This document shows positions 7,669 to 59,045 of a DNA stretch of 64,000 nucleotides, piece after piece; within the stretch, counting starts at the first letter, position 1; the number at the start of each line of letters is the position of its first letter. The notes beneath the pieces were generated by a model. The model saw only the letters and a list, made by a program, of their open reading frames with translations. It was not told the origin of the DNA and did not search any database. Source of the DNA: Rhodosorus marinus CCMP1338 (taxonomy: Eukaryota > Plantae > Rhodophyta). The stretch covers positions 1,302,001 to 1,366,000 of the forward strand of contig JAMWBK010000001.1 of the NCBI GenBank assembly GCA_029953675.1. The letters are read 5' to 3'. The position numbers and the translations under genes are program-made.

Positions 7669-8643
7669 ATGATGGGCGGAAAAGTGATCTTTCTTCTACT
7701 CCTGGTGGTCATCACTATCGGTGTGGCACAAGACACATGTGCTTCATTTCAACTTCCTGTACCCACAACGGTTAGACCAAACGGCGACCCATCCACTTCT
7801 ACCAAGCGGGCCTTTTGGGGCGATAAATACTGCCGGAAGTTGACGGTGCCGGAGCTGGATGGAAGCGTGCCGGTAGTCTGTGTGAACACTAAGATGATCG
7901 ACGAAGACACGACCTGCCTAAAGATGAGGCTGCGAAACGTTAACCGGTCCCTGGTGAAGTCCCTCAAGATTGGCGTGCACCCAGATTGCAGTATGGTTCC
8001 TCCTGTTGGTGGGAACCCGAGGAGGTTCCAGAGCCAGAGACTTGGAAAGAATTTAGGCGCTGGTCAAGTCATAAAGTCAGTGAAGCTCTGTTTCGACAAA
8101 GTCCCAGCGACACAACCGTGCTGTCGGACAACTCGGTGTTTGGTGATGGAAGCAACTATTGAGGTCGATGGAGTGGACACGACAGTAGAAATCGATGACC
8201 CTAGATGTGGCGAGGAACCGACGTGTCCATACTACATCGGCTGTCCAAACGTGATCGACGAAGAGTCAGACACGAGAAGGGGTGTTAAATACTTTTATGG
8301 CACAGTTTCCGACGATGTAATACTTCTACCTGATGTCCCGAACACGGCGACCTATACCTACGACGGTAGAGACGTAGTACTTGGCGGCAACGGAAACGAT
8401 GTTGTGTTCGCCGGAGAAGGAGAGAATATTATGAAAGGGGGCTTGGGCGACGACCAGTTTTTTGCCAATGAGGACGGAGTAAACAGAGTTTACCTCGGTG
8501 GCGGCATTGATGCATTTGGCCCCTTCCTTGACGGTGGTGCAACTCCAGACTACTATTATGGAGGCCAGGGGAATGACTATTACTTCTCTTACAATCTGGA
8601 TTACAACGATGTTGTCCAAAGTTTTGATGGCCCCATCTCGTAA
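7669..8643 (+). CDS. Secreted Cys-rich protein with C-terminal RTX-like (GGxGxD) Ca-binding repeats, paralogue 1 (324 aa)
   Basis: Signal-peptide-like MMGGKVIFLLLLVVITIGVAQ; 12-Cys domain; GGNGND, GGLGDD, GGQGND repeats; intronless; two intact paralogues. Confidence 0.85.
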   Translation: MMGGKVIFLLLLVVITIGVAQDTCASFQLPVPTTVRPNGDPSTSTKRAFWGDKYCRKLTVPELDGSVPVVCVNTKMIDEDTTCLKMRLRNVNRSLVKSLKIGVHPDCSMVPPVGGNPRRFQSQRLGKNLGAGQVIKSVKLCFDKVPATQPCCRTTRCLVMEATIEVDGVDTTVEIDDPRCGEEPTCPYYIGCPNVIDEESDTRRGVKYFYGTVSDDVILLPDVPNTATYTYDGRDVVLGGNGNDVVFAGEGENIMKGGLGDDQFFANEDGVNRVYLGGGIDAFGPFLDGGATPDYYYGGQGNDYYFSYNLDYNDVVQSFDGPIS

Positions 8644-8659
8644 CCCCAGACTAACGTAA
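8642..8659 (-). mobile_element. 18-nt tail-only insertion matching the family C 3' end
   Basis: Reverse complement TTACGTTAGTCTGGGGTT is identical to 60612-60629. Flanked by 11-bp TSD CCCCATCTCGT (8631-8641, 8660-8670). Absent from paralogues 2 and 3. Confidence 0.8.
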
Positions 8660-9439
8660 CCCCATCTCGTCGTAGATGGGTAGGAGGAGGTTATTGTTCT
8701 CAGAGGTTTAGTGTAAACCACGGAATGTGTCCCTTACGAAAACTAAAACAAGGGGAGAAGGTAGAGGACCTCCCTCAATGAGATATCAGAAAAGCCCCTA
8801 ATCGCAAAAAGTTTTTGAGCAGACGATTCAGGTGCTATCGCATTGACCGCCAGCTAACCATTACAGCTCCAGAGAATCCTATTGATTCCTTTGCCGCTGC
8901 GGACCTCAAAGCGTCTTTTCTGCGTGCCTTCGGCGGCTTCCACCTGTTCCCCGCCGTCCACACGCTGCTTAAAGCATAGAAGAGAACACTCGACAATTTT
9001 GAGGGAGCCACAAAGCAAAGCAAAAAGGCAGAAACTGATATGGCAGATTGTGGGCGCCCCAGATAAACGCTTACATCCGTGATTGTCGGGATGACACCCC
9101 AGACTTAAGTAAAAACGCCTCCCTTTGTGTCGACGAAATCTGTTGGAACGGTCTCGCGGTCAGCGGTGACCGAACGCTCTCAGCATGTAGAAGGATGATT
9201 CGCACATCGTCATGCATACGGTAGGACCGATGTGAGAACGGTATACGGTAGAAAAACCTTATAGGGGTTCAAACGTTTGAAATAGTTTGAACGGTACAAG
9301 GCATCGACTATCACCACAATATAGTAGGTTACTTAAGTGCGAGATATCGACCCCAAGGGTCAGGGAAACAATAAAGAAACCATCGAAGTTTGGCTGACGG
9401 GACTTTGGTCAAGGTTGGGAATCCTCGAAAATTCCAACA

Positions 9440-9451
9440 TGGTCTCATCGC
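9440..9451 (+). promoter_or_regulatory. Primer-binding site TGGTCTCATCGC
   Basis: Abuts LTR end. Identical 12-mer after the LTRs at 13392-13403 and 58290-58301 (minus). Confidence 0.85.
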
Positions 9452-9523
9452 TTGGTGCGATTTTGTAAGAACTGCTTGGTGCGTTTTTACGGGAATAGGG
9501 ATTGCCCGTGGTGTTGCCTCAGG

Positions 9524-12829: not shown

Positions 12830-13085
12830 TGTTACGCCATGACGGAACAAGTGAGCCGTCAAGAGTGTAGCCCAAAACAAGGCTAATAATAGATAAGTCT
12901 AGATCTAATAATAGTACTCTAGCAAACCCAGGACATGAACCGGAAGCCTATAAATACGGAAGTTACGACCTTCCGTCTTAGGATTAGAGCTAGAGGAGGG
13001 TATCCAAGATAGATAAAAGACGAAAACAAGAAGGGAATTTCAAATTATTTTGGATCACCGACACGCGTTAATGGAGAACGTGTCA
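12830..13085 (+). mobile_element. Solo LTR related to the adjacent gypsy LTRs
   Basis: TG..CA ends (tgttacg...gtgtca). Shares ctaataatagta.tctagca.acccagg and tataaatacg..agttacgaccttc with 13091-13390. Flanked by ACCTC on both sides. Confidence 0.8.
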
Positions 13086-13573
13086 ACCTCTGTGACGTCC
13101 TGACCTGACATCTGGCTAAACGTATCGGTGAGCTAAAAATAACCAGAATGGGTACAAAAACTGGTAAGGCCAAGATGGCTCGCAGCGGGCAAGATATGGT
13201 ACGGTCTTGGCTAATAATAGTAATCTAGCATACCCAGGTCATGGGTCAGAAGACTATAAATACGAGAGTTACGACCTTCCTTCCTAGAATGAGAGCTAGA
13301 GGGAGCTATCCAAGATAAGAAAAACATAAAAATAGTGGAGGTTTGGGAAAATAACTTGGATCCGGACAGTTGGAAACCTGAATCGTTACATTGGTCTCAT
13401 CGCATGTGTTGCGATTGACGGAACCTGAACCCCGAAACCAGAGGAACTCCTGAAACTTCAGAACCAGAGGAATATCCTATAACACCTTCAAAGACGACGA
13501 CCCAGAAGCAGTTAGCCTATCAACAAACGGCAATTGACCTTTTTAACCAGAGAATCAGAAAACTTGAACGAGA

Positions 13574-14347
13574 ATGGCATCTTTGATAAAGATTCAAGCA
13601 CCGCAGCCTAAGGCATACGATGGCAAGCGGGACGCGCTCGTCATAAGCACCTTCCTGAACAACCTTCGGACTTATTTCAAATTAGCCCGATTGCCCGACA
13701 ACGACGATGACTACAAAATTACTTTGGCGGAGGGTTACCTCACAGGAGACGCCTCCTACTGGTGGTCCCTCATCCCGGACGCGAAAAGACCCCTATACTA
13801 CGCCGGATTTGAGGAAGCGTTAAAATCCCAATTTTACCCGGCTGACGCGAAGATCCGCGCCAAGCAGCAATTGGCACGCGCCGTACAACGCACAACGGTC
13901 GCCGCCTATACAGCGTATTTTAACAAATGCTTGATCCAGGTTGGAGAAATATCAGACTCGGAGAAATTTGATCGCTTCGTGGAAGGGTTGCAACCAGACT
14001 TCAAGAAATATATTTACATTCAAGATATAACCACCTTCGAAGAGGCTCAGGCCCTGGCCCTTAAGATCGAAGGAGCGGACATTGCGAGTTACAGCTCAAA
14101 TTCGCGTAAGGAACAGACGCCCTACGAACAACCAAAACCGGTACCAAGGGCGACTCCTTCTGCGAGCAGACAAACCCGTTCGGGACGTCAATATCCACCA
14201 AGGACGCAAGAGCCCAACCGAAGCAAATATGCGAACATAATCTGTAACTACTGCGGCAAGACGGGCCATACCAAACGCATCTGTTGGGATAATCCTGACC
14301 GAGACATGACGGTCTCGAAATCGGCTCCGCCGCGAAGCAGCAGTTAA
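13574..14347 (+). CDS. gag: Gypsy Gag (257 aa)
   Basis: PKAYDGKRD, YLTGDASYWW, FVEGLQPD and zinc knuckle CNYCGKTGHTKRIC. Confidence 0.9.
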   Translation: MASLIKIQAPQPKAYDGKRDALVISTFLNNLRTYFKLARLPDNDDDYKITLAEGYLTGDASYWWSLIPDAKRPLYYAGFEEALKSQFYPADAKIRAKQQLARAVQRTTVAAYTAYFNKCLIQVGEISDSEKFDRFVEGLQPDFKKYIYIQDITTFEEAQALALKIEGADIASYSSNSRKEQTPYEQPKPVPRATPSASRQTRSGRQYPPRTQEPNRSKYANIICNYCGKTGHTKRICWDNPDRDMTVSKSAPPRSSS

Positions 14348-14416
14348 ACGATACGCAGCAGTAACCGACGCCGCCACTGCTGCAAGAAAAGGCGTCTCGA
14401 TCCAGGGAATAATGAT

Positions 14417-14713
14417 ATGACGGTACCTGGCTTGGTGAATGGTAAGGCCGTTACACTGCTCGTCGATACAGGGAGCAGTCATTCCGTCTTGAGAGGGAGA
14501 CCGAACGTCACTCCAACAATTTCGACTCAACACGGGAAATTGGACACAGCCTACCCGGGCGCGTCAATAGAAATATTGGGCAAGGCCAAAAATGACCTTA
14601 CAACTCGGCGGTCATAGCTTCAATTGGCAACCCTATATTGTGAAGGACGCCGCAAGCCCTGGATACCTAGGAAGAGACTTTCTGAAAAGTCTTAACGCAC
14701 AATTGGATCTCCA
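14417..14713 (+). pseudogene. pol: Gypsy aspartic protease (frameshifted)
   Basis: VNGKAVTLLVDTGSS motif, continuing in another frame as LQLGGHSF..YLGRDFLK. Confidence 0.8.
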
Positions 14714-15259
14714 GAACTTACTATCAGGTATCGGCAAAGGTTGTAGCTTTCCTGCTGAGTATCGCAGTGGCTTCTGTTTCTGGCAGACTTCGCAGGTTCG
14801 TAGGACGTCTTCAATATCCCGCTTTAACGTCGGCCAGTAGTATTTCCGCTTTAGTAGACTGATGGTCTTCGTGATTCCGAAATGACCACCCGTAGGTTCC
14901 GTGTGGTAGCTTTCCAAAAGTTCGGGTACCATGGAGTCTGGTATACAGATTCGGTGATGCCGGTACAGGACGTCGCCCCTTCTGATAAAACCTTGCTCCC
15001 GATACTTCGGAGGACTTTGATAGATCTCCGCAAACTCAGGGTCTTCGAGGTACGCCTGCGACCAGTCCACATCGGTCGTGATAGTGGACTCAACCATCTG
15101 TTGCACGGCATGACGACTTAACGCATCCGCAATATTCTCCTTGCCTTTTTTATACTCTATCGTAAAGGAGAAGGGCAACAGCCGGTTGACGTAACGTGCT
15201 TGCCGTTTGGTGAGTTCCTTCTGAGACCGAAGGAACCTCAGCGGGTGGTGGTCCGTCCG
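14714..15259 (-). pseudogene. pol: Inverted pol segment: RNase H end + integrase HHCC zinc finger
   Basis: VRTDHHPL...YKKGKENIADALSR...YHTEPTGGHFG...YYWP...CEVCQ on the minus strand inside a plus-strand element. Confidence 0.9.
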
Positions 15260-15300
15260 AACAGAAGCCACTGCGATACTCAGCAGGAAAGCTACAACCT

Positions 15301-16407
15301 TTGCCGATACCTGATAGTAAGTTCCAATCCATTTCTATGGATTTCATTACGGCCTTACCGACGACCACCGAAGGCTTTGACGCGATCCTTGTCATTGTCG
15401 ATCGGTTCTCCAAATACGCCCGTTTCCTTCCAACAACGACAACGGCGACTGCACAGACAACCGCGAAGTTATTCATGCGTCATTGGATTAGGTTCGCGGG
15501 GGTACCCGAAAATATTGTTTCGGATCGAGATTCAAAATTCACGGGGCATTTTTGGAAGGAATTAATGAGGCTGATGAAGATCCAGCAGAAACTAAGCACG
15601 GCGTATCATCCGCAAACAGACGGACAAACCGAGCGAACGAACCAGACGTTAGAGACATACCTGAGATGTAATTCAACAACCTCGACCTGGGCGACCGACC
15701 TTCCAATTGCAGAGCTAGCTTACAACTGCCAGGCTTCAGACTCAACGCAATTCTCGCCTTTCGAGTTGCTTTATGGCGCGAATCCGAGATTACCTTTTGA
15801 CATCACAGTTCCCGCCAGCGAAAATCCCTCCCGACCACTACCTGAGGCCGCCACAGTTATGATGCAACAACAACAGGACCAACGGTTGCTCGCAAAAGCT
15901 AACCTACGTTACGCCCAAGAATGTCAACGTCATTACTATGATCGAGGAAAGAAGGAGATCAGCTACGAAGTAGGAAATTATGTCCTTTTATCTACACAGA
16001 ATCTCCAACTTCCAGGTTCAAACGTTTTTCGACCCCGATATATTGGACCTTTTAAGATTCTACGAAAAATCGGAGAAGTCGCTTACAAGTTGGATCTGGG
16101 AGGAAAGCAGGACATTCACGACGTTTTCCACGTATCTCTCTCGCGGAAATTTAATGGACCTGAACCAGGAAGTACTCCTAAGACGACAGCGTTTCTACCC
16201 ACCTATTCACAAAGAGAGATTAAGTCAGTACTTGGGCATCGACTGAATGCTGCGCAGCTGGACGAATATTTCGTTTACTTCCAAGGTGAGACCACCGATG
16301 ACTTGAGATGGTTACCTTACCATCAACTACCTCAGAATCAGAATACTCGGAAGCAAATTAGATACTATGTTAACCTTCATAGAGCAGCCTCTTCAGCAAC
16401 CGGGTAG
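15301..16407 (+). CDS. pol: Gypsy integrase core + GPY/F + chromodomain-like C-terminus
   Basis: SISMDFITALP, VSDRD, YHPQTDGQTERTN, YIGPFKI, VFHVS, IKSVLGHR..YFVYFQG..RWLP. Confidence 0.9.
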   Translation: MPIPDSKFQSISMDFITALPTTTEGFDAILVIVDRFSKYARFLPTTTTATAQTTAKLFMRHWIRFAGVPENIVSDRDSKFTGHFWKELMRLMKIQQKLSTAYHPQTDGQTERTNQTLETYLRCNSTTSTWATDLPIAELAYNCQASDSTQFSPFELLYGANPRLPFDITVPASENPSRPLPEAATVMMQQQQDQRLLAKANLRYAQECQRHYYDRGKKEISYEVGNYVLLSTQNLQLPGSNVFRPRYIGPFKILRKIGEVAYKLDLGGKQDIHDVFHVSLSRKFNGPEPGSTPKTTAFLPTYSQREIKSVLGHRLNAAQLDEYFVYFQGETTDDLRWLPYHQLPQNQNTRKQIRYYVNLHRAASSATG

Positions 16408-40225: not shown

Positions 40226-40519
40226 CAAATACGCGGGGGCTTTGTCTTCCCCTGGTGTTCGTGCTTCGGCACTAGCACGTCGCTTGATACCCCTGATCAT
40301 TGAGTGCTTTGGGTTCATGGACTCTGTTGGCTCTCGCTGGCGTCGGGAGTTGTTCCGCGAACGCCCTGACCGTCTTCAATCGTTGTTTACCCGCTTAAGT
40401 TTCCTTCTGTGGCGCATGAATGCCGCTTTGATGTTGGAGGCGCGAGTTCTTCGCCGCACTTAGCCTTTTTTTCCCCTCGGGGTTTTTTCTTTCAGCCTCC
40501 GATTAAACCATTCTTCTTC
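40226..40519 (+). mobile_element. Family B 5'-truncated copy
   Basis: 10-bp TSD ATTCTGTGAA (40216-40225, 40520-40529), which starts with the tail unit ATTC. Confidence 0.9.
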
Positions 40520-41120: not shown

Positions 41121-41160
41121 GGACTTTACTAGCATAACTGGACTGGACTTTACTAGCATA
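41121..41160 (-). mobile_element. Two 16-nt family A tail fragments (GGACTTTACTAGCATA x2)
   Basis: Exact reverse complement of tatgctagtaaagtcc. Each is bordered by AACT. Confidence 0.65.
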
Positions 41161-45200: not shown

Positions 45201-45990
45201 TGCAATTCCTGGACGGTGCTCAACGATCAGCTTCACAGTGGGAGCGGGCAATGGAGCGGACTTTGGAGACACCGAGTTGGTGACCACTGTGGATGGGGAG
45301 GCGGTTTGTATGGATCAGAACTTTTCCCATCGCGACGGAGCGAGGACGTTCTTGTGTAACGTGGAAGGAGGGGAGGAGCTGAAACTTGCGGCCATCCGAG
45401 GAGATACTAGTGGTGCAATCATTGTCGGGGAGGCAGAGTTGGACTGTGCTGTCGGAACTCGGAAACCTGTGTGTGAGATGACCTCAATTCCCAGCAACTT
45501 TCGGGTTGGGGACACAATCGAGTATGCGGGGCAAGGCTACCGTTTCAACGGAGCAGAGCTACCAGGGAGCGCACTGAGCTGGGATATCACGCTTGTCCAT
45601 TGTGAACCGGAATGTCACGACCATCCGGAGGTCAGAGTAGAGGGCAGGAAGGGTGGGAGCTACGATGTTCCCGATCACGGCGACTACTTCTTTATCAAGA
45701 TCGACTGCACAGTAACGGACATGGGTGAGGTGTCTAAGAAATCGACGAGTGTGCTTCCGGAGACGGCTTTAATTACGGTGGAATCCGTGCCGACTGGGAA
45801 GCTCGCCACCGCCGACGGCACGAACGGCGAGACGCCCCTGTTGAAAACGGTGGTCGTGGGCTCAACGTTCACCGTGGATGTGGACCCAGTGGCTTTCGGC
45901 ATATGGTCACACGACAACACTCTCGGTCCAACTTTTGACTATCTTCTTGAGAGTGACACCCCGTTAGTCTTCACTGCTAGCTACAACTAA
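42205..45990 (+). CDS. Secreted glucose/sorbosone (PQQ-type) dehydrogenase-like protein with Big_5 Ig-like, NPCBM-like and PKD-like modules (~1261 aa)
   Basis: Signal-like MDAHVFAVVLVALVLQRTGVGA. GSDH motifs LWISVGD-like, GKVLRVN..G.G.PSNPYY, GLRNPW, DVG...EE.N, NYGWP. Two SbsA/Big_5-like blocks, three NPCBM-like blocks, LSWDITLVHC...CHDHP...VPDH C-terminal module. Domain names come from motif recognition, not a search. Confidence 0.85.
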   Translation: MDAHVFAVVLVALVLQRTGVGATLTKVDFEDAPVVGSIDGLPTDFAFLPPGQTDRILVTGYRGTVQVVVRGAVQEKLFLDERVSQAELDSWTGYPRLWDRGLAPEYRSVAVDSDFQNHPYVYLAYFHYIERVRRTPPQGFVVRYRVSNDLSEAIRSSKRFILGGYVSGNCTQISTTEDTICITAPDHTMAGLLADPQGRVWISVGDSAFWDDFDRPNAMRAQDVDTLYGKVLRVNRSGKGLPSNPYYDGSPDSNRSKVMVLGLRNPWNIHWDAELDTPWVSDVGEATLEEFNLVQPGANYGWPCMEAELDRFQFGIFNECVDLFNNVPPSSGASYVGAKVGPKLSYSHEEGTAITAALRVNIEGWPDAFNNGVYYSDYSGNWIRYVKVDDVGNVVSAPLEFATGVPGPINLRPGSDGCLYYLALASSQIGRICYRENNSPPEVVGIVPPDGFTGAARSTLVEVAVSKKVTAESAQASIVVVETVSEVVVAGHVEQDEVRNILTFVPNEALKEDAEYTVTVSALIDLKNLSMIGEVTSTFFTGRGFVQYVSDLALAVDPTPEAVYRDTAINGVTPIFIRGRRFRKGLSFVPVVRVGVQVPSGCTSIEGFYGMDDTARWIVAGAVIFTIAVDGSIVYDSAADGLGFPSRKVDPATFFSMDVESGSTLTLGGDFGGRHENQEDNRGAWADVRFRCGNIDSRAPKIESIDPGDGSTTSIDVVIRIVFDEVMNYNTVLQAVSIASVDGRRIPWLPVESTEPRLFALELESLEFDTTYVVSVSKTAIDVSGNRLEEDVQWSFATEFPPATGEKLQFLGDLTPKRSRGGVSFNGFPRRLSPGVQIYENGLGMQANAMVSYDLGGLACTRLKGLTGKDAAARGDSGACRLRVFSGANREASRMRVDRYPRAAQRSRGLSVGLGGDSYLEIKLSAGGDGGQAKDLCDIARARVECDGVDIYLTELTPLSERGVVERNRSAVQLPLQLLRSSMTFETGIVIPAGAEVTYAIPGRCSTISFTVGAGNGADFGDTELVTTVDGEAVCMDQNFSHRDGARTFLCNVEGGEELKLAAIRGDTSGAIIVGEAELDCAVGTRKPVCEMTSIPSNFRVGDTIEYAGQGYRFNGAELPGSALSWDITLVHCEPECHDHPEVRVEGRKGGSYDVPDHGDYFFIKIDCTVTDMGEVSKKSTSVLPETALITVESVPTGKLATADGTNGETPLLKTVVVGSTFTVDVDPVAFGIWSHDNTLGPTFDYLLESDTPLVFTASYN

Positions 45991-46655
45991 AGCCGACGGT
46001 TCAGAATTTTTTCCCAGATGTGCGATAAAAGTTGCGCTGGCGGGGCTCAGCTGAATGCCCACGTGAACCCAGCTACTATCAAAAAAGGCTTCTATGATTC
46101 TGGAAAGGCAAATCCATAGGCTGATTGCTAACGATGAATCCAATCAACAGAGTGATAGGAGTTACTGTACTCAGACATTGGGTGCTGGCAGCGAGCTAAC
46201 CGTGTACCACCAGTACTAACGGCATGGAGATGGCTGTCAGAATAGAGGATTGTAGTTTGTAAATACCAAATGGGAAACATCGTCCAGGCCGCCTGGGTCA
46301 GATCATATGTTTGCACGCATGTTCCAGAGTGAACGTTTCCGAAGTCCGAAGACCGCGGAGCAAAATTTTCATATAAAGACCAATATTTGACGTGAGCATA
46401 CCCAAAGTGGACGGAGAATGAGAACATCCACTTCGGGTATGCTCAGTAAAGTCCATGTGTTCGTTTACGGGAAGCGCTTCCCTGGTACGCCTTCCCCTCG
46501 ATTTTCCGCGGGGCGTCGTTTGCATTTGCAAGTACTTCTGTCTTCCGGGTGGGTGTGTTGCGGGGCCTTTCCTATTTGGGTTGGGTTTGGTCGATTATTC
46601 TCTCGGTGCGGTTTCATATTGGTGGTGCAACGTTTACTTTGCGCATTCCCTCAGG

Positions 46656-48065
46656 ATGGTAGGGATATCTCCGCGCTCGACGGAGCCTCCTCCCAAGGAG
46701 GCACTGCCAGGTGGGGGACTCCGTGTTCGCATCAGCTGCGACACCTTTTCTTCCGAGGTTGACTTGGAAGGCGCTTCTGGCACCCAGGCGCGTGCACTTA
46801 TCTCCGCTGTCACCAGCCTGATCACGGCTGCGAGTGATCGTGGAGTGCTCCCTCAGCTCACCCAGAAGCTAGGTGGGCTGGAATCGGGATTGCTGGCCAG
46901 GTCAAATTCAAATTCGGACGAGAATTTGAATTGCCCCAGAGTGGCAGCGTTGGCTGAAGGCAGTCAACATCAGGTCAATCAACATGAACCTGTCCCGGGA
47001 CAGGCGAGGGTGGTTGCTTCTGCGCGGGACAGTACGACGTTGGGGAGCGGCAGGCCGGGCCAAAACGCGCTTCAGCGCTCGGGGACTCGAGGCAATGGTG
47101 GTGGTGACTGTGCGGCAACCGGTGTGGAGGAGACTGCAGCTGTGGACTTCCCTCTCTTGGACCAGCACTCAGGTGGTCACCAGCTCCCGGCTACTGCGGG
47201 GGCACGTGGTGGCCGCAAGGGGGGCGCTTCGTACGCATCAGTCTTGCGAAAGGGCACCACTGCCACACGTACGGCGGCTATGCTCCGTTTCATACCATCT
47301 CGCGAGCCTCAGGATGGACCTGTGGAGACCACTCTCCAATTTCTGTGGGTGCGAAATGTCCGGCCCCAGACTACACGAGGACAGGTTCCGTCTATGCGAG
47401 ACTTCCGGGACACTTTTGCGGAATCCTTAGGGTGCAGCCGGGGTGATTTCTTCTTCGCAAACTATGAGGGCCGCGATGTGCTGTTTTTGGTCTCCGCAAC
47501 CGCCGCCAAGTACCTGGAGGCCTTGCTGGCGAATCCTACCGAGCAGTGGCCTGAGGGCGCCAGGTGGCTGCGCTGCAACCCGCAGGTGGTTTTGCGCTTG
47601 GATTTTGACCGTTTCTCGGGCAATTTCCTGTCTCCGGGAGAAACGGCAGGGCTCTCTGAGCATGAGAGCAGCGTGAAGGCGGCAGCGATCCATTGGCTAC
47701 GGTTTCAGCGCCTTGAGAGGATCTTGTTGGAGCGGTTCCGGTCGGGCCCTCGTCACCTGCGCATGGCGGTGTCCAGCTTCTTCGATCTGGAGAGGCGACT
47801 TGTGCTGACTTCGCGCTACCAGACAGAGCTGCAGCGGGTGGAGATTTTGGAGGGCTCTGCTTCCAGCACCACTTCCAGCGAGAGTGGTGAGGCAGGGGAG
47901 CAGACTGAGAGCATGGCGGTGGAGGACGCCCAGGTTACTTTGCTGAAGCCCGCGGGATCCGTTCCGCGAGCCTCGCGGAGTGGGCGGCTCACGACTTTGG
48001 TGCGGATAGGAGGTAAGAGAGCGAGGACCGACTCCCCCGGGTCTAAGGGGGAGAAGCACGATTAG
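46656..48065 (+). CDS. Family A ORF1, copy 2 (469 aa)
   Basis: Intact; same length as 761-2170. Confidence 0.8.
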   Translation: MVGISPRSTEPPPKEALPGGGLRVRISCDTFSSEVDLEGASGTQARALISAVTSLITAASDRGVLPQLTQKLGGLESGLLARSNSNSDENLNCPRVAALAEGSQHQVNQHEPVPGQARVVASARDSTTLGSGRPGQNALQRSGTRGNGGGDCAATGVEETAAVDFPLLDQHSGGHQLPATAGARGGRKGGASYASVLRKGTTATRTAAMLRFIPSREPQDGPVETTLQFLWVRNVRPQTTRGQVPSMRDFRDTFAESLGCSRGDFFFANYEGRDVLFLVSATAAKYLEALLANPTEQWPEGARWLRCNPQVVLRLDFDRFSGNFLSPGETAGLSEHESSVKAAAIHWLRFQRLERILLERFRSGPRHLRMAVSSFFDLERRLVLTSRYQTELQRVEILEGSASSTTSSESGEAGEQTESMAVEDAQVTLLKPAGSVPRASRSGRLTTLVRIGGKRARTDSPGSKGEKHD

Positions 48066-48096
48066 CGCTCCAGGCACGGCTGCGAGGTCGCAGCCT

Positions 48097-51000
48097 ATGG
48101 ATCTACAGTCTTATGTCCTGAAGGAGGGCGGAGACTGGGGCATTTGGCGTACGCGTTTTCGGAGTTTGCTCCGGCGGTGGATTTCTTTGGAAGGAGGCTC
48201 GCTTCCCCTCCGTGGGGGCATTCCCCCAGTCGTCCTCCCTCGTGGAGACCTTCTAGTAGCTGGAACCATTCTCGATTTCATCTTCACGAGCCTGGCTCGT
48301 GAAGATTCGGGACACAGTCATTTGGGTTTTTCTGGGGGTCATGCCGCTCCTGATTCTGGCCCCCATTCAAACATCGGAGCGCAGATGGCGAGTACGAGAC
48401 CGACTGGCCCTGTTCTTGAAGGGAGACTTCGAAGTACTACAACGCAGCTATTTGGCGACGTCAGCACCATCCGCCCGTCGGACTCGGCATGGCACAGTGT
48501 CGCCCGTGCCGGCTCGAGTACAGAAATTGGTTACAGTGGGCGATTTAAGTCGAGCGGCGCGGATTTTGGAGGGCCAGGCGCCTGTCCTCCCCTACGATGA
48601 TAGTCTCACCCAGACGGTGTCGTCTTTGTTCCCTGAGTCCGACGTGGACTTGTCCCCTGAATTCGAGGTATTCTTGGACCGTCAGGAGTTGGCCAGGTTT
48701 CGCATCCATCTGACGCTCAGTGAGTCTGACCTGGATGATTTGCTTCGTACCTCGCGTCGGGGACGCTGTCCCGGACCCTCCGGACTAAGAACAGAGCTAT
48801 TGCAGGCCCTGAGCCAGCCTGGCCAGAGCGCGCTTCTGAGGATCCTTAACAAGTTGTTCCAGGGCGTATCGGGTGCGTGTGCGCCATGGGAACATCTCCG
48901 GCAGGCACAGCTTTGCTTGCTCACGAAACCTGACCACCAGCCGGCCCACCCGCGTCTCCGGCCGATCGGGATGGTGGAGAGCCTACGGAAGTTAGCCGGG
49001 AGGTGGCTGTGCCAGCGCCTTCGCCAGCGCGTCACAGCTTTTATGGCGCCCTTGCAAGTAGGGGTGGGATTTTCTGGGGGTTGCGAGCTGATCAACCATG
49101 GGATCGAGCTAGAACGCGCCAGTAGGCCGGAGTGGGGAGTCTTGGTGGTTGATTTCCGGAACGCATTCAACAGTGTGTCGCGGACGCATGCGCTAGAGGT
49201 GCTCCGACGGGTGTTTCCGGAGGCGTGGCCGTTTCTATCGGGTATTTACGGAGGGGAGAGCCTCCCCTACTTGACAACGGAGGGCACTGTTTTTCAGGCA
49301 CATACTGGCGTCCAACAAGGCGACCCTTGCGGACCTCTTCTTCATGCCTGTGACCTACAGCTCGTACTATTACGTCTTTCGACTGAGGTCTCGGATCTTC
49401 GAATCTGCGCGTACCACGATGACGTAACATTGCTGGGCACCCCTGACACACTGGCTAGGGGGCTGAACGAGATCGAAGCGATTGCACGTCGCGTCGGTTT
49501 GACTGTGGAAACAGAAAAATGTCGCTTTCTCCCCCCGAGGGACGTGTCGCTGGCCTCTCTGCCACCCACTCTGCGACTAACCAGCGAACGTGAAGGGTTC
49601 GAACACCACGGCGTCGGATTAGGGACTGACAACTTTGTCCAAGCATCCTGCGAGCGAGTTTTGGCACGGCACAAGCAACTCACCGACGCCCTTGAGCACC
49701 TACCCGACAGCATGCTGCAATCGACCTGCTTGCTTTCCCGCTTTTGTGCCAGTCCCAGACTCAACTACTGGTTGCGCAGCCTGCCTCCAGCTTGGGGCTC
49801 GTGGATCGCGGCTAAAGCCGACGAGATGACCCTGCAACACTGGGGAACGCTCTTGGATGAGCCCCTCGATCTTGAAGCTGCTCCCGACAGGGACTTGATT
49901 CGTGCACAGATCGCTCTACCGTTGCGAGTAGGGGGATTCGGCGTCGCAGACCGTGGGCTGGTATGCTCGCCAGCGGCGGTTGCCTCCTGGGCTACCGCGC
50001 TGCAAACGTTGGTGACCTTCCAGATACGAAGTGCCTGCCTCTTGGATCGAGCTTTGACCAACGAGGATCCAGTGACCCTGCCGCCCCCGCTTTTGACAAT
50101 TTATGATGGTCTTCAACACGCGTTCAGGAGGTGCAACGCCGTGCCGGACGCAAATCGGTCCCGCTTTCGTTCCTGGAGGGAGCTGTTATGGGGACGAGCT
50201 GAAGCGATTGAGGATTCTCCCCTCGACCAAGTTCTTGCCGATGACGGAGAGGCTAGCCCCGGGTCACCTGTTGCAGACTACTCGGTTTTAAGCCGATTGT
50301 GGAGCTCCCGCACTGATGTGATTCAACATAGCCTCACCTGAGGCCAACACAGTGCCGCTCACACAGTCATGCTCAATTCTCCTCTCACGCCGCCTACCAC
50401 TGCCGCTCGTCTCCGCGGCATGGGAGGCCACCTCTCGCACTTGTGGTTAACCACTCTACCGTCGTCATTGAGTCATCGTCTCGATGCTTTCCAGTTCCGT
50501 TCTGCCGCACGGATCTATCTCGGTTTGCCACAGGCTCCGTGGCACTCTAATCGGCCGTCTTTCTGTCAGGGATGTGAGAGCCGGATTGACGCTTGTGGCT
50601 ACCACTTCCTGGGTTCCTGCGGACTGTTGAGAGGTCTCCGTACGAGGCGTCACACTCGCCTCAAGTACATCCTCAGCGAATTTTTGACTCGGATAGGGCA
50701 TACGGTTGAGGTTGAGTCGGAGCTGCGCAGATCAATCTCGGACTCTGCACCGCCCCGTTGTATAACCGATCTCCTCGTCTCCGACGCTGCTGCCAGACGC
50801 TCAACATATGTGGACCTCGCGATTACCTGCCCCGTGGCCAGCGCCCACCTCACCGCAGCCGCCCGCCGCCGGGGGGCCGCGGCTTCAGCCCTTCGAAGAG
50901 TTAAGGAACGACGGTATGCTGAGAGCATGGCCAGTCTGCCTTGCGCTGAGGGTCGCTCTCACCGGTTCCAGCCATTCATTGTGGAAAGCTTTGGTCACGT

Positions 51001-51115
51001 TGATAAGTCGGGTTTAGAGTGGTTGCGGAAATGTTTTGCTGAACATCCTACTGAATATTTGGCGCTCTTGAGGCGTTTAAGTGTCTCCCTTTGGCGATAT
51101 TCCAGCGACATGCTT
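48097..51115 (+). pseudogene. Family A ORF2, copy 2, disrupted
   Basis: +1 frameshift near 48300 and TGG>TGA at 50339-50341. Confidence 0.9.
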
Positions 51116-51116
51116 T

Positions 51117-51723
51117 GCCTGCTCGCTAGTTGCCCGACGGTGAAAGGTGCTCGAACCCGCCGCCATACACGGATCTTGAACCTGTTATACCGGGAACTTC
51201 GGCCTATAGTCCGGCAAGCCGGTCTGGAAATCGAACGTGAGAAACCTTTACCCGTCGCGGACTTTCAAAATGATGAACGCCGTGTAGCCGACCTGGTGAT
51301 CACCTGTGACGACAGCCGCCGTACCACATACGTTGATCTTGCTGTTCCTAACCCTCAAGCTAGTCGTTATCTCCCGGCTGCGGGGGAGCGCCGTGGATCT
51401 GCCGCCGCCAGCATGAGACGCCGCAAAGAGATCAAATACGCGGGGGCTTTGTCTTCCCCTGGTGTTCGTGCTTCGGCACTAGCCCATCGCTTGGTACCCC
51501 TGATCATTGAGTGCTTTGTGTTCATGGACTCTGTTGGTTCTCGCTGGCTTCGGGAGTTGTTCCGCGAACGCCCTGACCGTCTTCAATCGTTGTTTACCCG
51601 CTGAAGTTTCCTGCTGTGGCGCATGAATGCCGCTTTGATATTGGAGGCGCGAGTTCTTCGCCGCACTTAGTCTTTTTTTCCCCTCCGGGTTTTTTCTTTC
51701 AGCCTCCGATTAAACCATTCGTT
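51117..51723 (+). mobile_element. Family B 5'-truncated copy fused in frame to family A copy 2
   Basis: Junction gacatgcttt|g|cctgctcgctagttg. Ends in B tail ccattcgttc. Confidence 0.92.
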
Positions 51724-53067
51724 CGCTATTGCGTGGAGCCCTTCGCAACTGCTCTGGCTTTGAATCGCTGAAAAAAACCGCCTAGGGCTTGCTTCATATG
51801 GAACACAATTCTCGATTGAAGAATTCCCCCCCCTCCCGCCCCCCCCCGCGGGATTTCTGACCCAACGGATTCCGAGGCTCCTGATTGCATCACCTGGGCA
51901 CTTTCGCACTCCTTCGCGCGATCTGACTTAATCTTTCTCACCCTTGAGGAGTATTAGGTTTGAAAAGTCATGATCGCTTCCCGCAGCGCTTCTTCCACCT
52001 CGCTCTTCTTCGTGACCGCGAAGAGCGAGGTCCAGCTTGCTGTCTCGCCTACAAAGACCGCGAGGTATCTTTATTTCCCCATACCAGTGGGGAACGGACC
52101 ACAAGAATCCGTATGCAACATCTCACTGGGTTCATCCGCATGAGTGACTACTTCAGGGTGCCTGCTGTTATTTTGGCCTTCGTGCAGTCTTCCCAGTCCC
52201 CGCCTCTTGCTACGACGTCGGTTATCCCACGTCTGGACAAGACGTCCAAAGCCTCTTCTCCCAGATGTCCCAATCGACGATAGACGATCTCTCTGGGCTG
52301 TCGCCTGTTGCCCGCGATATTTATCAAAGTCGATACATAAGGGGTGATCTCACGGCGAACTGGTCGTCCGTTCCAAGTCGACAAATCATTAGTGAGACGT
52401 TACCTTTACTTATTACTAATTCTTCGGGACCTTCGCTATGAAGTCGGAAAGTCCCTAACCGAAGATAGACTATAGACTACTTCAGGAATATAGTGGGATT
52501 TTGCTAACATAGCCTGATGCGCTACGGAAGACGCAAAAGTGGACGTCCTTCAATATCATTTCCGCGCTGAGCTTAGCGGGAAAATAATGTCGCCCTTGCC
52601 AACGGCGGGACTATGAGAATCGTTCCCGAAGTAAAATGGAGTCGGATGATCTCCTTGTAATTCTTGAGATACTTCCTCTCGTTGCAGACGTGATCCGTGC
52701 AGCCACTGTCAAGCCAGAAGTTACTCTCAACAGGGATAACTTCTTCTCGCAGCGAACTCGCACAACGAACTTCCATCTCCCCGGAGGGCACTCCCTCTTA
52801 AAGCGCCCTTCTTTTCCACATCTCTAACAGGTTGGCCTCTGCACAACCTGTGTCGCCAAGGCCCTTGTCGTCCGGGGATTTTCCTTCCTCCTGCTGCCAA
52901 GCCCCATCACGCTCCAGTAGCTCTCCAGTTCCCTCACTGTGCTCCCCACGTGAGTGGACTCGAGGCCCGCCACTGTAGATAGACGAGCTCCTGGAAGAAT
53001 TGCATTCCTTCCGAACGAATGGTTTAATCGGAGGCTGAAAAAAAAATACCCCGAGGGGAAAAAAAGA

Positions 53068-56000
53068 CTAAGCGCAGCGAAGTACTCGCGCCTCCAACAT
53101 CAAAGCGGCATTCATGCGCCACAGCAGGAAACTTAAGCGGGTAAACAACGATTGAAGACGGTCAGGGCGTTCGCGGAACAACTCCCGAAGCCAGCGAGAA
53201 CCAACAGAGTCCATGAACACAAAGCACTCAATGATCAGGGGTACCAAGCGATGTGCTAATGCCGAAGCACGAACACCAGGGGAAGACAAAGCCCCCGCGT
53301 ATTTGATCTCTTTGCGGAGTCTCATGCTGGTGGCGGCAGATCCACGGCGCTCCCCCGCAGCCGGGAGATAACGACTAGCTTGAGGGTTAGGAACAGCAAG
53401 ATCAACGTATGTGGTACGGCGGCTGTCGTCACAGGTGATCACCAGGTCGGCTACACGGCGTTCATCATTTTGAAAGTCCGCGACGGGTAAAGGTTTCTCA
53501 CGTTCGATTTCCAGACCGGCTTGCCGGACTATAGGCCGAAGTTCCCGGTATAACAGGTTCAAGATCCGTGTATGGCGGCGGGTTCGAGCACCTTTCACCG
53601 CCGGGCAACTAGCGAGCAGGTGGGCGCCAAAATCTGCGTTGTCTTCAGTCTGAGAGCAGAGAGGGCACGACGAACCCATCTCGTACGGCCAAGGGGGCTG
53701 ATGTAAGCCGAGGTATAAGCGCAGTGAAGTACGCACTTCGAAATCCGACAGTGTGAGTGGCGGAAAGGCTGGTACGGTCATGAGCCACTGAGAGCTAAGA
53801 ACCCCTCCAAGACTACGTAGGCGGGCGCGAGCGCGAGAAGATGAGACCATCTGCGCGAGGAGTCGGCCATATGCAGCACGGTGCAAGTCCCAAGAAAGGA
53901 TATTTTGCAGCGCATCCGTGCGTGCTTGAGCTCGGCTCCCAGCGCGCTGGGAATCATCAGGAGGATCAACTGGAACTTCTTCTTCTGCGACAACTACTGG
54001 GTCAATCTCCCCTAGAACAGGTTCAGGCGCAGGACGAATCCCCGGGGCGGAGCCTCGAGAGCGGTCAAATACAGCTCGCCAGTCAGGAAGACGGGGTTGA
54101 ACGGTTTCGGGGAGACTAGTACAGGAATTCAGGGCGGTTTGGAGCTCCAGAAACAAGTCTTGGGCGCTTTCCGGTACGCTGGGAAGCAAAACACCCCGCG
54201 AGAGGCTCGCCATCAAATTGCGGAACTTCGAGATACCCAAGCTGCTCAAAGTGGGAAGTGCGGTTCCCCAGGCCCCTACTGCGGCTGCAGGTTGGACCAC
54301 AACACGATTGCAGAGGCCCAGTCCCCCCAATCGCAATGGGAGGCCTACCTGGGCGCGCACAACATCACAGGTGGGTCGCGGCAGAGCGCTCAGCTCTTCA
54401 TCGAGAAAATACCCCAGGTCACGGAAACTTTCAGCATCCGCACGAGTGGCCAACCACCGGCCCCAATGAGTTGGAAGTGAGCGAAGCCAATAGGTTAACC
54501 GCTGACCGCAACAATACCGAAACAGCAACAACGAGCACTGGAGAAAGCCCGGAGGTAGCCGTCGAAGCTCTGCAACCAGCTGTCTGTGCTTACCGAGGAG
54601 CTGCAGCAACTCGCCTTCAACGAAGGACGGCGACCCGTAGGGGATGCCTAAGTGGACAAAACCATCCGGTCTCCAAATATCCTGGAACGACGCAGGTACC
54701 TGCTGCTCTTGTGCAGCTACACCTCCCCAGTAGAACGATTTGTGATGATTAACCTCCAGGTCAACCCGTGAAGCCAAGGAGCGGAGACGATCATAAGCGA
54801 GCGCTAGAGTATCAGGGGGCCCCAGGAGGCACACGTCGTCGTGGTATGCAACCGTACGAACCTGCGGGAATTCGGAGCGAAGACAAAGCAAGACGAGTTG
54901 TAGTCCACAGGCATGTAGGAAAGGGGACAAGGGATCACCCTGTTGTACCCCTGTGCGCGCCGCAAACGTGTGTGAGGAAGCGCCAAGGGTGTCATAGGTA
55001 GCCCCACGACCAAGGGGAGAATAAAGTCTACTAACAGAGGGAAAGCCTACAGGGAAGACTTCGCGCACCACGTGCATGAGAGCCGGACGAGAGACGCGGT
55101 TGAACGCATTGGTAAAATCTACAGAGAGGAGCCCAGAATCTGGGAGTACGCCATTTCCGAACGGAGTAAAACAGACAACAACTCACAGCCACCACGATAG
55201 CCCACGCCTAACTGCACGTGCCCAAAGAAACGGCGGGATTCGGGAACCAGGATTTTCACTAACCATCGCGCCGCCAATTTGCGGACCACCTCAACCAGGC
55301 CAATAGGGCGAATAGCAGGGCTCGAGGCCGTGTGGCTGGGCTTCGAAAGCAGACACAACTGCGAACGCCCGACCAAGAACCACGCACACTCACACAGGGG
55401 ATCACCATTCACAAGCGCTTCGACCACCCACGCCAACGCCTTCAAACCTTCATCACTTAAGAAACGGAGATATTCCACCCGCAGCCCCGAGGGCCCTGGG
55501 GAACGGCCCTTCGGAGCATCATGAACCAACTCACGCACCGCCTCCAGATTGACCACTAACCGCGCACTGGGATGTGGCGCGGCGCGGTACTCTTCCAACA
55601 CTGATTCAAACGAGGAGTCCCAAGGGGAGCCTTCCGAGGGAAAGAGCAAACGGAGCGGTGAAGAAAGATCATCGGAGTATGGAACCACAGGTTGCCGCTG
55701 CTGGAGGATCCCGGCTGCCCGCCGCAGATCACCGCCCGCCACCGCGTGACGCGCCCGATTCTGTCGAGAAGCCCTAAAAGCTGAGGGAGCACTAGGAGAA
55801 AAGGAAGAGAGAGAAGCAAAATAAAGACGTTCGAGGTCCTCAAAGTCGCCGGAAAGGAACATTTGCAGTTTTCGGCGAGGGTGGACCCGGCGAGGATGTG
55901 GGTTGAGGGGGACGGTAGAGGAGGTGAGCACGAGGCGGGGAAAAAAGAACAAGAGTTCCCAGCGAAGAGAGCAGTGAGGGTTCGCGGCGACCTGCTGCCA

Positions 56001-56210
56001 GAGAAAATCCAACACCAATCCTAGGGGCTTATGAAGTCGACGAGGGAGCCGTACGGCCGTGCTCTGACGACAAAGGGGAAGGGAACCGTCCGGGTAGGAG
56101 GCGACAAGGTGCGAAAACCACGAGAGGACACGCTCATGCCAGGCTGAGCGGTCACTGGTAAACAGGGGTAACCGGGACGACACGCACGCGGAGGAGGAAG
56201 ACTCAGACAT
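53068..56210 (-). CDS. Family B ORF2 (RT + CCHC + RLE), one apparent 1-nt frameshift near 55145
   Basis: MSESSS...RPIGLVE, VDFTNAFNRVSR, GVQQGDPLSP, AYHDD, CPLC..H...C..RH, VADLVI..YVDL. Two frames join if one C is added at tactccc. Confidence 0.85.
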
Positions 56211-57501
56211 CGGGCCTCCCCTCAGTCGGGAAGGCAGATCGAATATCCGGAGGAGGTGCCTCGGAGGGAGGCTCAGGAGCCGCACGACGCTTACGTGGGG
56301 GGCGCACGAAGGAACTAAAAGACCTGAAGAAAGTAGACACAGGGTTTTCAGCAGCGGAGTCTTGACTGAGGGTGTCCAGAGCCAGCGGATTCGGAGAGGC
56401 CGATGGTGCTCCTGCCATGTCGGTGTCACGAGCCTCGGAGACAGGGTGAGGGGAGGAAGGGTGCTCAAGAGTCGGCGGCAGAAGGTCAAACGCAGGGTGG
56501 GCTTCCAGCAGGGTGGCCTCAGTGGAGAGGAAGGCCTCTAGCGCGGTGCGGAGGACCCCGCGAGGAGGAAAACGCGCGAAGAGGCTCGCCTGTATGCGCG
56601 AAAGCCGCGCCGCATGAGTGTGTAGCGCGACAACCGAAGCCTGCGAGGCATCCAGGTTTTGCAAGGCCGACGGAGGAACCCAGCCGGCGTCAAAACGATC
56701 GAACTCGACAAACAAAGAGACATGAGGACGAGTCAGTATCATGTTGGCCAGAGCAGAGCGCTGGGGCGCGGGGGTGGTTACAAGCGATTGAAGGAACTGG
56801 TAAGCCGAGTCAGTAACAAGAAAACAGGCATGAGGGCCCGTGAAGTCCACATATAGGAATTCAGATGGGGCGACCCCAAGGGAGGAAGCCATGGTGTCGC
56901 GAAAATCGCGGTAGTGGACGGGCGCGCGGCCCCGACCACGAGAGGGGGTCTGGGGACGCACGTTCGTCATCCAAACAAAGTGGAACGGAGATAGTTGGCG
57001 AGAAGAGTCAATAGGGATGTGTTGTGGCATCATACGCACCATTGCCGTCGTGCGTTGTTCAGGAGAGCCCCTGCGCAGGACCTGCGAATAGGTCGCACGT
57101 GGGGCACTGGAGGGAGCAGGATTCGGGCCCGACGCGGGCCCAGGAGGCGTCTGTCCTTGAATAGGGGTAGGCCAGTCGGAATCAGGAATGACCGGAGCGG
57201 AGCGCTCGGGTCGGGTGGAGGCAGGCCCCGCTGTACCGTGCGGATCCGCGGGGACGGGCACCGGGGGGTATGGGGCAGGCGCGGAGGCGGAGAAGCGCTC
57301 CAAATAGGCGATCAGCAGGGGAAGGCGGTGTTCCTGGGAAGCAGTCACAAGAAGACTCGTCAGTTTCGAGCAGATCCCATGGGCCAACTCGTCAGCGCAG
57401 TCCGTGAGGGTGGCCGCGGTACTAAACCCGCCCACGCTGAGCTCCACACGCGCTGAGAGAACGGCTCCGTCCGCCGGAATGGGTGGGGAAACCCCAACCA
57501 T
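56203..57501 (-). CDS. Family B ORF1 (432 aa)
   Basis: MVGVSP start. Shares NVRPQT..RDFRDT..SLG..FLV..FDRF with A ORF1. Overlaps the ORF2 start (ATGTCTGA). Confidence 0.8.
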   Translation of the reverse strand: MVGVSPPIPADGAVLSARVELSVGGFSTAATLTDCADELAHGICSKLTSLLVTASQEHRLPLLIAYLERFSASAPAPYPPVPVPADPHGTAGPASTRPERSAPVIPDSDWPTPIQGQTPPGPASGPNPAPSSAPRATYSQVLRRGSPEQRTTAMVRMMPQHIPIDSSRQLSPFHFVWMTNVRPQTPSRGRGRAPVHYRDFRDTMASSLGVAPSEFLYVDFTGPHACFLVTDSAYQFLQSLVTTPAPQRSALANMILTRPHVSLFVEFDRFDAGWVPPSALQNLDASQASVVALHTHAARLSRIQASLFARFPPRGVLRTALEAFLSTEATLLEAHPAFDLLPPTLEHPSSPHPVSEARDTDMAGAPSASPNPLALDTLSQDSAAENPVSTFFRSFSSFVRPPRKRRAAPEPPSEAPPPDIRSAFPTEGRPDV

Positions 57502-58479
57502 AACGATTGGAAGGTGTGAAAAACCGATTCCCCCACGAAACCCCCAAAAAGAGAACTTGTTCCCAACGTTTGCAACCAAAGAAAAACCACCACGACCTCC
57601 AAGGGGCGCTAGCAACCCCCAGCACGCACCACACCACTAGAAGATGCGGGGGAAAGGCTGCAGAAAGAAGCGCCTCCCACCAAAGAACACAATTGCGACT
57701 CAAAACCACCAAAAGCCAGCACCATACACCCTCACGAAACCGAAAACTCTCGCGCCTTCCAAGGCACTCCTCAGAATACGAGCTTTTCATCTTCTCTGAG
57801 CTCCTCCTGGGTAAATTCCGTGATCTCCGTGAACTCATCCTCGAAGAATTGGATGAGGTCGCAACCACGGGTTCCCCTGATCTTAGGCGTCTGTGGCAAA
57901 AGCCTCGTCCAGACGGCATCTGCAGTTCCCCCCTGCCTGTAATCGTACGGATCCAGGAGGATCAACCAAGACCGGCTGGGGTCCAGTTGCGCCCTCCACA
58001 TCGCAACGTCAAGTGCTGGGCCCTGCAGCGTAGATGAGAGGACTGCCATCACAAACCTGCCCCCCGTGGAGTTCGTGTCCAGCTCCTCACTCCAGGCGAT
58101 AGCATCGGCATAGTTGTGCAAGTTCAGGTACGCAAGTATCTGAAACTTTCATCTACCGAACGACGACTTGTCCCTTCTCTCCCCGAGAAGGGTTCAGGCA
58201 TCAACATTCTTAACCTCCGTGGCAAACCGCCACCCTCTCTTTCCTCCCTCGCCATTACGACAAAGAAAAAGAACTAACCTAATGCCTTTGCGATGAGACC
58301 ATGTTCCCCCCCCAAATTTTCGCCAGCACCGGTACCCCTTCTTTATTGAGCACTAACGCGCTGCGAACCTACAATTCATTAAGTACTCGATCGGTTAGTC
58401 CGCCGTAGTACGACGAGGATGGATCATCCAGATCAATCACGATACAACCGTCTGCGTTGCTACATACCGGGTATCTACT

Positions 58480-58490
58480 GGGCTTTACTA
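58480..58490 (-). mobile_element. 11-nt tail-only family A insertion (TAGTAAAGCCC)
   Basis: 10-bp TSD GGTATCTACT (58470-58479, 58491-58500); on the element strand it reads AGTAGATACC. Confidence 0.75.
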
Positions 58491-59045
58491 GGTATCTACT
58501 AACTACTTATGCTACTGCCTACTACCGCCAGTACCCGCTTAGGTCTGATCACGAATGACCTCACCTACCAACACCTGAGAACTGATATTCTATGCTCTGT
58601 CTGTAGCAAGAGGTGCAAAATCGAAACGACTCCAAACAGCATGAAGACTTGTCAGTTGCTGATACAGTTGCCATCCCGTCACATGGCCCTGAAACGTGTT
58701 GACGGAGGTAATCAACGTGAAACCCTAGAAAAGGAACAAGGCGTGTTGAATCAAGACACATATGTGTAGACTCTGAGGTGACTTAGAAGAGTCGGAGGAA
58801 ACCAAGCACGGTACCTATATAAGCCAAACTCACCGGCATACTAGTGAGGGATACTCCAAGACAAGAAACAAGAGACACAACAAGCGTCAACTCTGAGGTG
58901 ACTTCGGAGAGTTGGAGGAAACCAAGTGATACCCATATGAGCCAAACTCAACGCATCCTAGTCAGGGATACTCCGAGACAAGCAATAAGAGATGTAACAA
59001 GTAAGGACACAAATACCTGATTTTGTTAACAGGTTATCTGGGGTT

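Follow-up and report, generated by a model that had tools for sequence, protein, structure and literature searches.

How little of its own RNA can a retrotransposon copy into a chromosome and still complete an orderly integration? The question is raised by 64,000 nt of the red alga Rhodosorus marinus CCMP1338 (contig JAMWBK010000001.1, positions 1,302,001 to 1,366,000; hereafter the window), a single stretch of one genome, saturated with transposable elements, to which all results below refer. About 44% of the window aligns to three families of long interspersed nuclear elements (LINEs), here termed A, B, and C, which encode a restriction-like endonuclease (RLE). Four micro-inserts match exactly the last 11-20 nt of one or another of these families, and each lies between perfect direct repeats of 10-14 bp. 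Most likely, they are complete integration events of these resident, non-site-specific RLE LINEs, in which target-primed reverse transcription (TPRT) ended after 11-20 nt.

Four element tails between target-site duplications

An original prediction, made from the DNA sequence alone, had described four short inserts equal to resident family 3' ends and bracketed by direct repeats, and all four are present as described. The family C insertion (8631-8670, minus strand) consists of the 18-nt insert AACCCCAGACTAACGTAA (8642-8659) between two copies of an 11-bp target-site duplication (TSD), CCCCATCTCGT (8631-8641 and 8660-8670). The insert is the reverse complement of TTACGTTAGTCTGGGGTT, the 18 nt with which family C ends; GG microhomology extends the match to the C end to 20 nt. 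Family B accounts for two insertions, both on the plus strand. At the first (33530-33570), the final 13 nt of family B, AAACCATTCGTTC (33544-33556), are flanked by the 14-bp TSD GATACGAATCTGTC (33530-33543 and 33557-33570). At the second (38959-38987), the 10-bp repeat TTCTAGAATA (38959-38968 and 38978-38987) surrounds a 9-nt spacer, AACCATTCG (38969-38977); the 13-14-nt tail TAAACCATTCGTTC (38967-38980) shares 3-4 nt with the flanking repeat, and the site reads as a 9-13 nt insert with a 6-10-bp TSD.

The family A insertion (58470-58500) carries the insert GGGCTTTACTA (58480-58490) between copies of the 10-bp TSD GGTATCTACT (58470-58479 and 58491-58500). The string quoted for it in the original prediction is the reverse complement of the element strand, so this micro-insert lies on the minus strand, as does the C micro-insert relative to its own element. 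Read on that strand, the insert is TAGTAAAGCCC, the last 11 nt of family A, and the TSD is AGTAGATACC, which starts with AGTA as do the targets of long A copies. All four inserts are colinear with the 3' part of their element and terminate exactly at its 3' terminus.

Two of these sites have uninterrupted counterparts nearby. The C insert sits at the end of a host gene that belongs to a set of three paralogs with RTX-type calcium-binding repeats, open reading frames (ORFs) of about 330 aa (7648-8643, 21653-22651, and 33871-34845) in segmentally repeated DNA. Both other paralogs (near 22635 and 34831) lack exactly 29 nt, the length of the insert plus one TSD copy. Likewise, the target of the B insertion at 33544 is present in single copy in paralogs near 21380 and 36165, each of which lacks 27 nt. 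At both sites, therefore, the insert and one copy of the repeat constitute a true insertion with target duplication. Sites 38969 and 58480 have no paralog in the window. In the first RTX paralog the C micro-insert creates a TAA one codon ahead of the normal stop; thus one micro-insert has already changed the stop codon of a host gene.

Shared signatures with longer copies

The TSDs of the micro-inserts (10, 10, 11, and 14 bp) match those of longer copies in length (12 and 11 bp for A, 10 bp for B), a comparison that draws on the few long copies whose TSDs are resolved; nesting and head-to-tail arrays obscure the TSDs of most others. A 183-nt 5'-truncated A copy (62539-62721, within 62526-62733, plus strand) has the 12-bp TSD AGTACACTACTA (62526-62537 and 62722-62733). 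A 5'-truncated A copy of about 890 nt, nested in a C element (59568-60477, minus strand), has an 11-bp TSD (TCCAGCTGGTC on the minus strand; 59568-59578 and 60467-60477), and a 5'-truncated B copy of about 294 nt (about 40223-40516, within 40216-40529, plus strand) has the 10-bp TSD ATTCTGTGAA (40216-40225 and 40520-40529). The flanks of the 5'-truncated C copy (58956-59037 and 60630-60711) form a direct duplication of about 82 bp, 92.7% identical, of a local tandem-repeat unit of about 120 nt. This may be a long TSD, whereas that of the C micro-insert is 11 bp.

Many A copies are followed directly by AGTA, the first bases of the A tail unit. In both the 183-nt copy and the 11-nt insert this AGTA begins the TSD, and hence is target-derived; for B and C too few sites are resolved for the same comparison. 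The presence of AGTA in A targets fits priming through pairing of the RNA tail with the nicked target.

Enrichment of termini and of very short copies

Tail strings of this kind are expected by chance 0.00 (C), 0.08 (B), and 0.75 (A, allowing one mismatch) times in the window. Outside DNA masked as A, B, or C, 35 isolated stretches of 13 nt or more in the window are identical to parts of element copies, and 14 of the 35 fall in the last 25 nt or so of an element. By comparison, k-mers that end within 2 nt of the terminus make up 59 of 13,735 element k-mers (less than 0.5%), so that isolated fragments are enriched for termini about 150-fold. A flanking repeat of at least 10 nt accompanies four of 14 isolated tails, versus 0.2% of 20,000 random sites (binomial P about 2e-8).

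Perfect direct repeats of at least 10 nt around a spacer of 5-30 nt were sought without bias across the window; 12 such structures came up, versus 1.55 expected. Eight of the 12 involve LINE tails, and the other four are near the chance number. The latter (9450-9483, 12883-12914, 13436-13472, and 38540-38578) have repeats of 10-11 nt; their spacers, of 12-19 nt, correspond to no TE end present in the window. Conceivably, these are tail-only insertions by families that reside elsewhere in the genome.

The length distribution was evaluated for families A and B with a constant-hazard fit to copies of 91-1000 nt (27 copies, the fitted class; three copies are full length). Copies of 25 nt or less number 12 versus about 2.8 expected, with a Poisson P of about 3e-5 by our own estimate, and those of 26-90 nt number two versus about 6.3; the count is rough, since detection below 13 nt is incomplete. 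Moreover, three B events begin at one and the same base, 13 nt from the element end. The excess of very short copies, together with this common boundary, hints at a distinct early-abort step.

The elements and their enzymes

That the three families are of the RLE type, as originally predicted, is supported by a reverse transcriptase (RT) together with an RLE domain, and by the lack of any Exo_endo_phos match, the mark of an apurinic endonuclease (APE), in the ORFs of the window. ORF2 of A and B contains a Pfam RVT_1 domain; among solved structures, R2 proteins match best (E about 1e-14). In A, ORF2 encodes an R2-like RT, a CCHC motif, and the RLE domain; B ORF2 is 38-41% identical to that of A. 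An alignment of the A, B, and C carboxyl termini retains CxxC..H..C, RRH, E..P, (A/P)D, VD..(V)T, and K, and its profile, which spans the CCHC motif and the PD-(D/E)XK nuclease, matches the RLE region of R2 structures (E = 2e-6). No zinc-finger or Myb domain was detected in ORF2. More than 40 copies share common 3' termini, have 5' ends ranging from 11 nt to full length, and lack long terminal repeats (LTRs). Whereas R2 proper inserts site-specifically into 28S rDNA and carries amino-terminal zinc-finger and Myb DNA-binding domains, their targets are varied and include a gene end, other TEs, and unique DNA; therefore, these families are not R2 proper and are R2-like by enzyme only. Judged from their sequences, A, B, and C are R2-like LINEs with a restriction-like endonuclease that are not site-specific.

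The full-length A element (561-5300, plus strand; ORF1 503-2170, ORF2 2201-5275) ends in ...GCGTAGCGCTTCAGGCTATGCTAGTAAAGTC, and a near-full-length B element (53013-57747, minus strand; ORF2 split into 55119-56489 and 53068-55077) ends in ...CAGCCTCCGATTAAACCATTCGTTC. Family C is represented in the window by 3' parts: a copy whose 3' end (60464-60629, plus strand; ...ACGGTTACGTTAGTCTGGGGTT, the C 3' terminus) is separated from its upstream part (59046-59577) by the nested A copy, and a second, diverged fragment (23677-24336, minus strand) that encodes an RLE domain (RPD...D.T.T motif). The A terminus reads ...GCGTAGCGCTTCAGGCTATGC-TAGTAAAGCCC, frequently with additional AGTAAAGCCC units. The B terminus reads ...CAGCCTCCGATT-AAACCATTCGTTC, in which CAGCCTCCGATT, directly upstream of the tail, is a conserved motif of the 3' untranslated region (3'UTR). 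Accordingly, the earlier notion that about one tail unit is copied holds for family A, with its 10-nt tandem unit AGTAAAGCCC, but not for B and C, whose tails contain no repeating unit.

The nearest named relatives of the RT are uncharacterised proteins of the red alga Pyropia (33% identity); the contig that carries the nearest relative is a lone 6-kb piece. Strings from the A and B 3' ends had no match in two metagenome scans, and Rfam recognized no known RNA family in the window.

Weaker fragments and complex junctions

Additional tail fragments are less clear. An isolated 13-nt B tail (AAACCATTCATTC variant; 28764-28776, minus strand) shares its 5' boundary with both clean B events but has a flanking repeat of only 3-6 nt. 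Three further positions (41121, 40758, and 35870) had been listed as weaker cases; tail fragments of 15-17 nt are indeed present there, but the flanking repeats are short or imperfect. Thus, a 17-nt tail of a B-like subfamily, ATTAAACAAATTCATTC (35869-35885, minus strand), has no convincing TSD, and a 16-nt A-variant tail, CTATGCTAATAAAGCC (40758-40773, plus strand), is flanked by the imperfect repeat TTAATCA / TTATCA. Two 15-nt A tails, ATGCTAGTAAAGTCC (41121-41135 and 41145-41159, within 41117-41163, minus strand), are contained in a duplicate with a 24-nt period, which may represent either a single tail-only insertion that was duplicated later or two hits.

Other fragments adjoin or interrupt element copies. 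A 52-nt complex insertion (28375-28426, plus strand) within a minus-strand A copy is not flanked by a TSD. Of its length, 21-23 nt (28385-28407) are A tail, opposite in orientation to the host copy, and about 30 nt are other sequence. Two A-variant tail fragments of 12-14 nt, 5 nt apart (28570-28602, minus strand), lie directly upstream of a 5'-truncated A copy. An A-tail-like fragment, ATGCTCAGTAAAGTCC(A) (46440-46455, plus strand), abuts a full-length A copy on its 5' side (first base of the copy, 46457), and CTGGGGTT (59038-59045, plus strand), the last 8 nt of the C tail, borders the 5'-truncated C copy at its 5' junction. These last two are compatible with template switching onto the 3' end of another RNA. 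In general, several of the weaker fragments, without a TSD or at the junctions of other copies, may have arisen through template switching or break repair instead of as separate insertions.

Longer composites also occur. An element at 46440-51724 comprises the 16-nt A-tail-like fragment, a nearly complete A copy without its last 81 nt (46457-51116), and, joined directly to that copy, a 607-nt 5'-truncated B copy (51118-51724), with an ORF that remains open across the A/B junction (50369-51604); it looks like the product of serial template switching in one insertion. Head-to-tail arrays of 5'-truncated A copies (26259-28602 and 31132-31947), including three identical 110-nt units, have no flanking sequence between one tail and the next 5' end. 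They could result either from repeated insertion at earlier tails, through AGTA microhomology, or from template jumping.

A model for abortive integration, and its rivals

That the micro-inserts are TPRT products that ended after the 3' tail, as originally proposed, is supported directly by several observations: their identity to the element termini, their TSDs and empty sites, the TSD length that they share with long copies (and, in family A, the AGTA microhomology), the enrichment for terminal sequence, and the surplus of copies of 25 nt or less. This suggests the following series of steps. The element endonuclease would nick one strand, and the 3' tail of the RNA would pair through a few bases with the nicked end (in family A, the AGTA target with AGUAAAGCCC at the start of the tail unit). 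The RT would then copy just the last 11-20 nt before the template is lost. The second strand would be nicked 10-14 bp away, as in ordinary insertions, and fill-in repair would fix an insertion of tail plus target duplication totalling about 20-30 bp. We infer the enzymology of the abort and of its resolution: copying presumably ceases when the RT arrives at the conserved stretch of RNA that the protein holds, directly upstream of the tail (in B, CAGCCTCCGATT), and release of the RNA may itself license the second-strand nick. Such licensing is consistent with the avian R2 system, because there bound 3'UTR RNA blocks the second nick until it is released (PMC13486585).

Several points weigh against this interpretation. 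It is based on a single TE-saturated window, in which the four sites are known from assembly sequence, and two of them (38969 and 58480) lack an empty-site control. About half of the isolated tails have no clear TSD, and the short-copy counts include fragments adjoining other copies, which possibly are not independent events. The density estimate for such inserts comes from this one 64-kb region; the description of the events as programmed found no support in the window data. The cause of the abort is a further weak point. In single-sequence folds a closing stem lies 2 nt 5' of the B boundary (13 nt), while the A boundary (11 nt) coincides with the foot of a hairpin, so that a stall at a 3' stem would fit A and B, but not C. 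This idea is no more than speculation: the fold z-scores are insignificant, and nine B and B-like 3'UTRs show no covariation and do not keep the stem. Finally, the window data fit RT abort and earlier breakage of the RNA template equally.

In the latter scenario the RT would copy, to its end, a 3' RNA fragment that was already short through degradation or cleavage. Terai et al. (PMC2831318) did propose template truncation or degradation as the origin of the short pseudogenes that L1 makes with normal TSDs, and nothing in the window separates it from abort on an intact RNA. Nevertheless it appears unlikely: a 13-nt RNA would be without the conserved 3'UTR motif CAGCCTCCGATT, the presumed binding site of the protein, and random decay hardly explains the same 13-nt boundary in three B events. 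Host break repair provides another source of short inserts, by templated filler in polymerase-theta end joining or by endonuclease-independent capture of cDNA or RNA at double-strand breaks, and may well explain those extra fragments that are TSD-less or lie within complex insertions. As an account of the four clean events it is very improbable. Polymerase-theta joining draws on a template near the break and leaves no regular staggered-cut duplication, but here the nearest identical tails are 0.95-52 kb distant, the perfect 10-14-bp TSDs equal those of long copies in length, and the inserts always stop exactly at the element terminus.

It is scarcely credible, finally, that the inserts are remnants of longer insertions after deletion of the body, or products of chance or slippage in short degenerate repeats. 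The A site does lie in AGTAG-rich sequence, with a TSD identical to the tail unit at seven of 10 positions, and the structure at 41117-41163 could be a slippage duplication. However, deletion would have had to take out, in all four cases, the whole element as far as its last 11-18 nt, starting right at the upstream TSD and leaving both TSDs untouched; chance is opposed by the expected 0-0.75 tail strings and the 0.2% null for flanking repeats; and the paralogs carry a single-copy target.

If abortive TPRT as modeled here is general, it constitutes a recurrent mutational process that makes insertion-duplications of about 20-30 bp that elude repeat annotation. The micro-inserts also bear on what licenses second-strand nicking by RLE LINEs, since a normal TSD accompanies a cDNA of 11-18 nt. 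The common boundary in family B suggests a definable checkpoint between initiation and elongation, of relevance to attempts at gene insertion with engineered R2-type proteins, for which truncated products are a difficulty in practice. One may tentatively go further, to a possible rule for these RLE RTs: a discrete early checkpoint at which, once the 11-13 nt downstream of the held RNA motif have been copied, the template is often released and the second nick is still completed. Were that so, tail-only stamps with TSDs would form about as often as real retrotransposition occurs, and much of the indel input of about 25 bp in this genome, genes included, would be element-specific and come from them. 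They would also provide natural evidence that orderly second-strand cleavage requires neither the 5' RNA nor a long cDNA.

Other features of the window

LTR retrotransposons are interspersed among the LINEs. The regions 13574-16407 and 60763-61083 hold Ty3/gypsy gag and integrase fragments and an ORF that has the look of a copia-type gag (no Pfam match). A segment of about 229 nt (61505-61734) is palindromic, matching its own reverse complement at 81%. An intronless gene (42205-45990) encodes GSDH, NPCBM, and Big_5 domains; its product is 85% identical to one protein from a marine protist transcriptome (MMETSP). This gene may have been acquired by horizontal transfer, because its remaining relatives are bacterial or metagenomic, at about 33% identity.

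Comparison with known systems

5' truncation that preserves the target-site signature is standard among elements that use TPRT (R2 review, PMC13580325; also PMC2718515). Stage and Eickbush (2009, PMC2718515) describe 5'-truncated R1 and R2 copies that retain the normal target-site signature. As in the present families, R2 has an RLE-type enzyme, the 3' junction is precise, truncated copies have the target signature of full-length ones, and the 5' junction shows microhomology of 0 to a few nt or extra bases. Unlike them, R1 and R2 are specific for sites in ribosomal DNA (rDNA), and R2 yields a 2-bp deletion rather than a 10-14-bp TSD. Truncated copies there are generally hundreds of bp long, and the text consulted reports no class that consists of just the last 10-20 nt.

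In brevity, the closer parallel is with the short processed pseudogenes made by L1, which also are very short copies of RNA 3' ends with full-length TSDs that standard annotation misses; premature template loss was held responsible for their shortness (Terai et al. 2010, PMC2831318). They differ in that the machinery is of the APE type and uses poly(A), the copies are up to 300 bp rather than 9-20 nt, and the templates are cellular mRNAs rather than element RNA. In organization, A, B, and C resemble the HERO-like, non-site-specific RLE LINEs of the CRE/R2/R4/NeSL/HERO group (Kojima and Jurka 2015, PMC4640811), with an RT followed by CCHC and RLE, dispersed targets, and variable TSDs; for Utopia lineages, TSDs of 0 to 20 bp are reported (PMC4640811). 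A and B differ in that their ORF1 is separate and that neither an amino-terminal zinc finger nor a Myb domain is detectable.

The complex junctions invite another comparison. Template jumping by R2-type RTs (e.g. PMC8857657) would explain the tails at 46440-46455 and 59038-59045, the A/B chimera, and the head-to-tail arrays. The original work on it is reportedly that of Bibillo and Eickbush. Such jumping is known from in vitro assays, whereas here it would be read from junction sequences alone, and insertion beside pre-existing tails yields an identical picture.

By analogy with avian R2 (PMC13486585), shedding of the RNA once a short cDNA has been made could still set off a regular second nick and, with it, a normal TSD; the avian element targets rDNA and nicks 2 bp upstream, and the likeness to A, B, and C is one of analogy. 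In a non-exhaustive literature search, no description of a tail-only or abortive-TPRT class was found for RLE elements. What appears unusual here is the shortness of 9-20 nt, the apparent excess, the occurrence in three RLE families side by side, and the common boundary in one of them. Extreme 5' truncation with a normal TSD is an established outcome of TPRT, and therefore the novelty is one of degree, and of frequency in RLE elements, rather than of kind. The tail-only inserts are best read as a quantitative variant of known 5' truncation, at an unusually frequent extreme, and not as a new mechanism.

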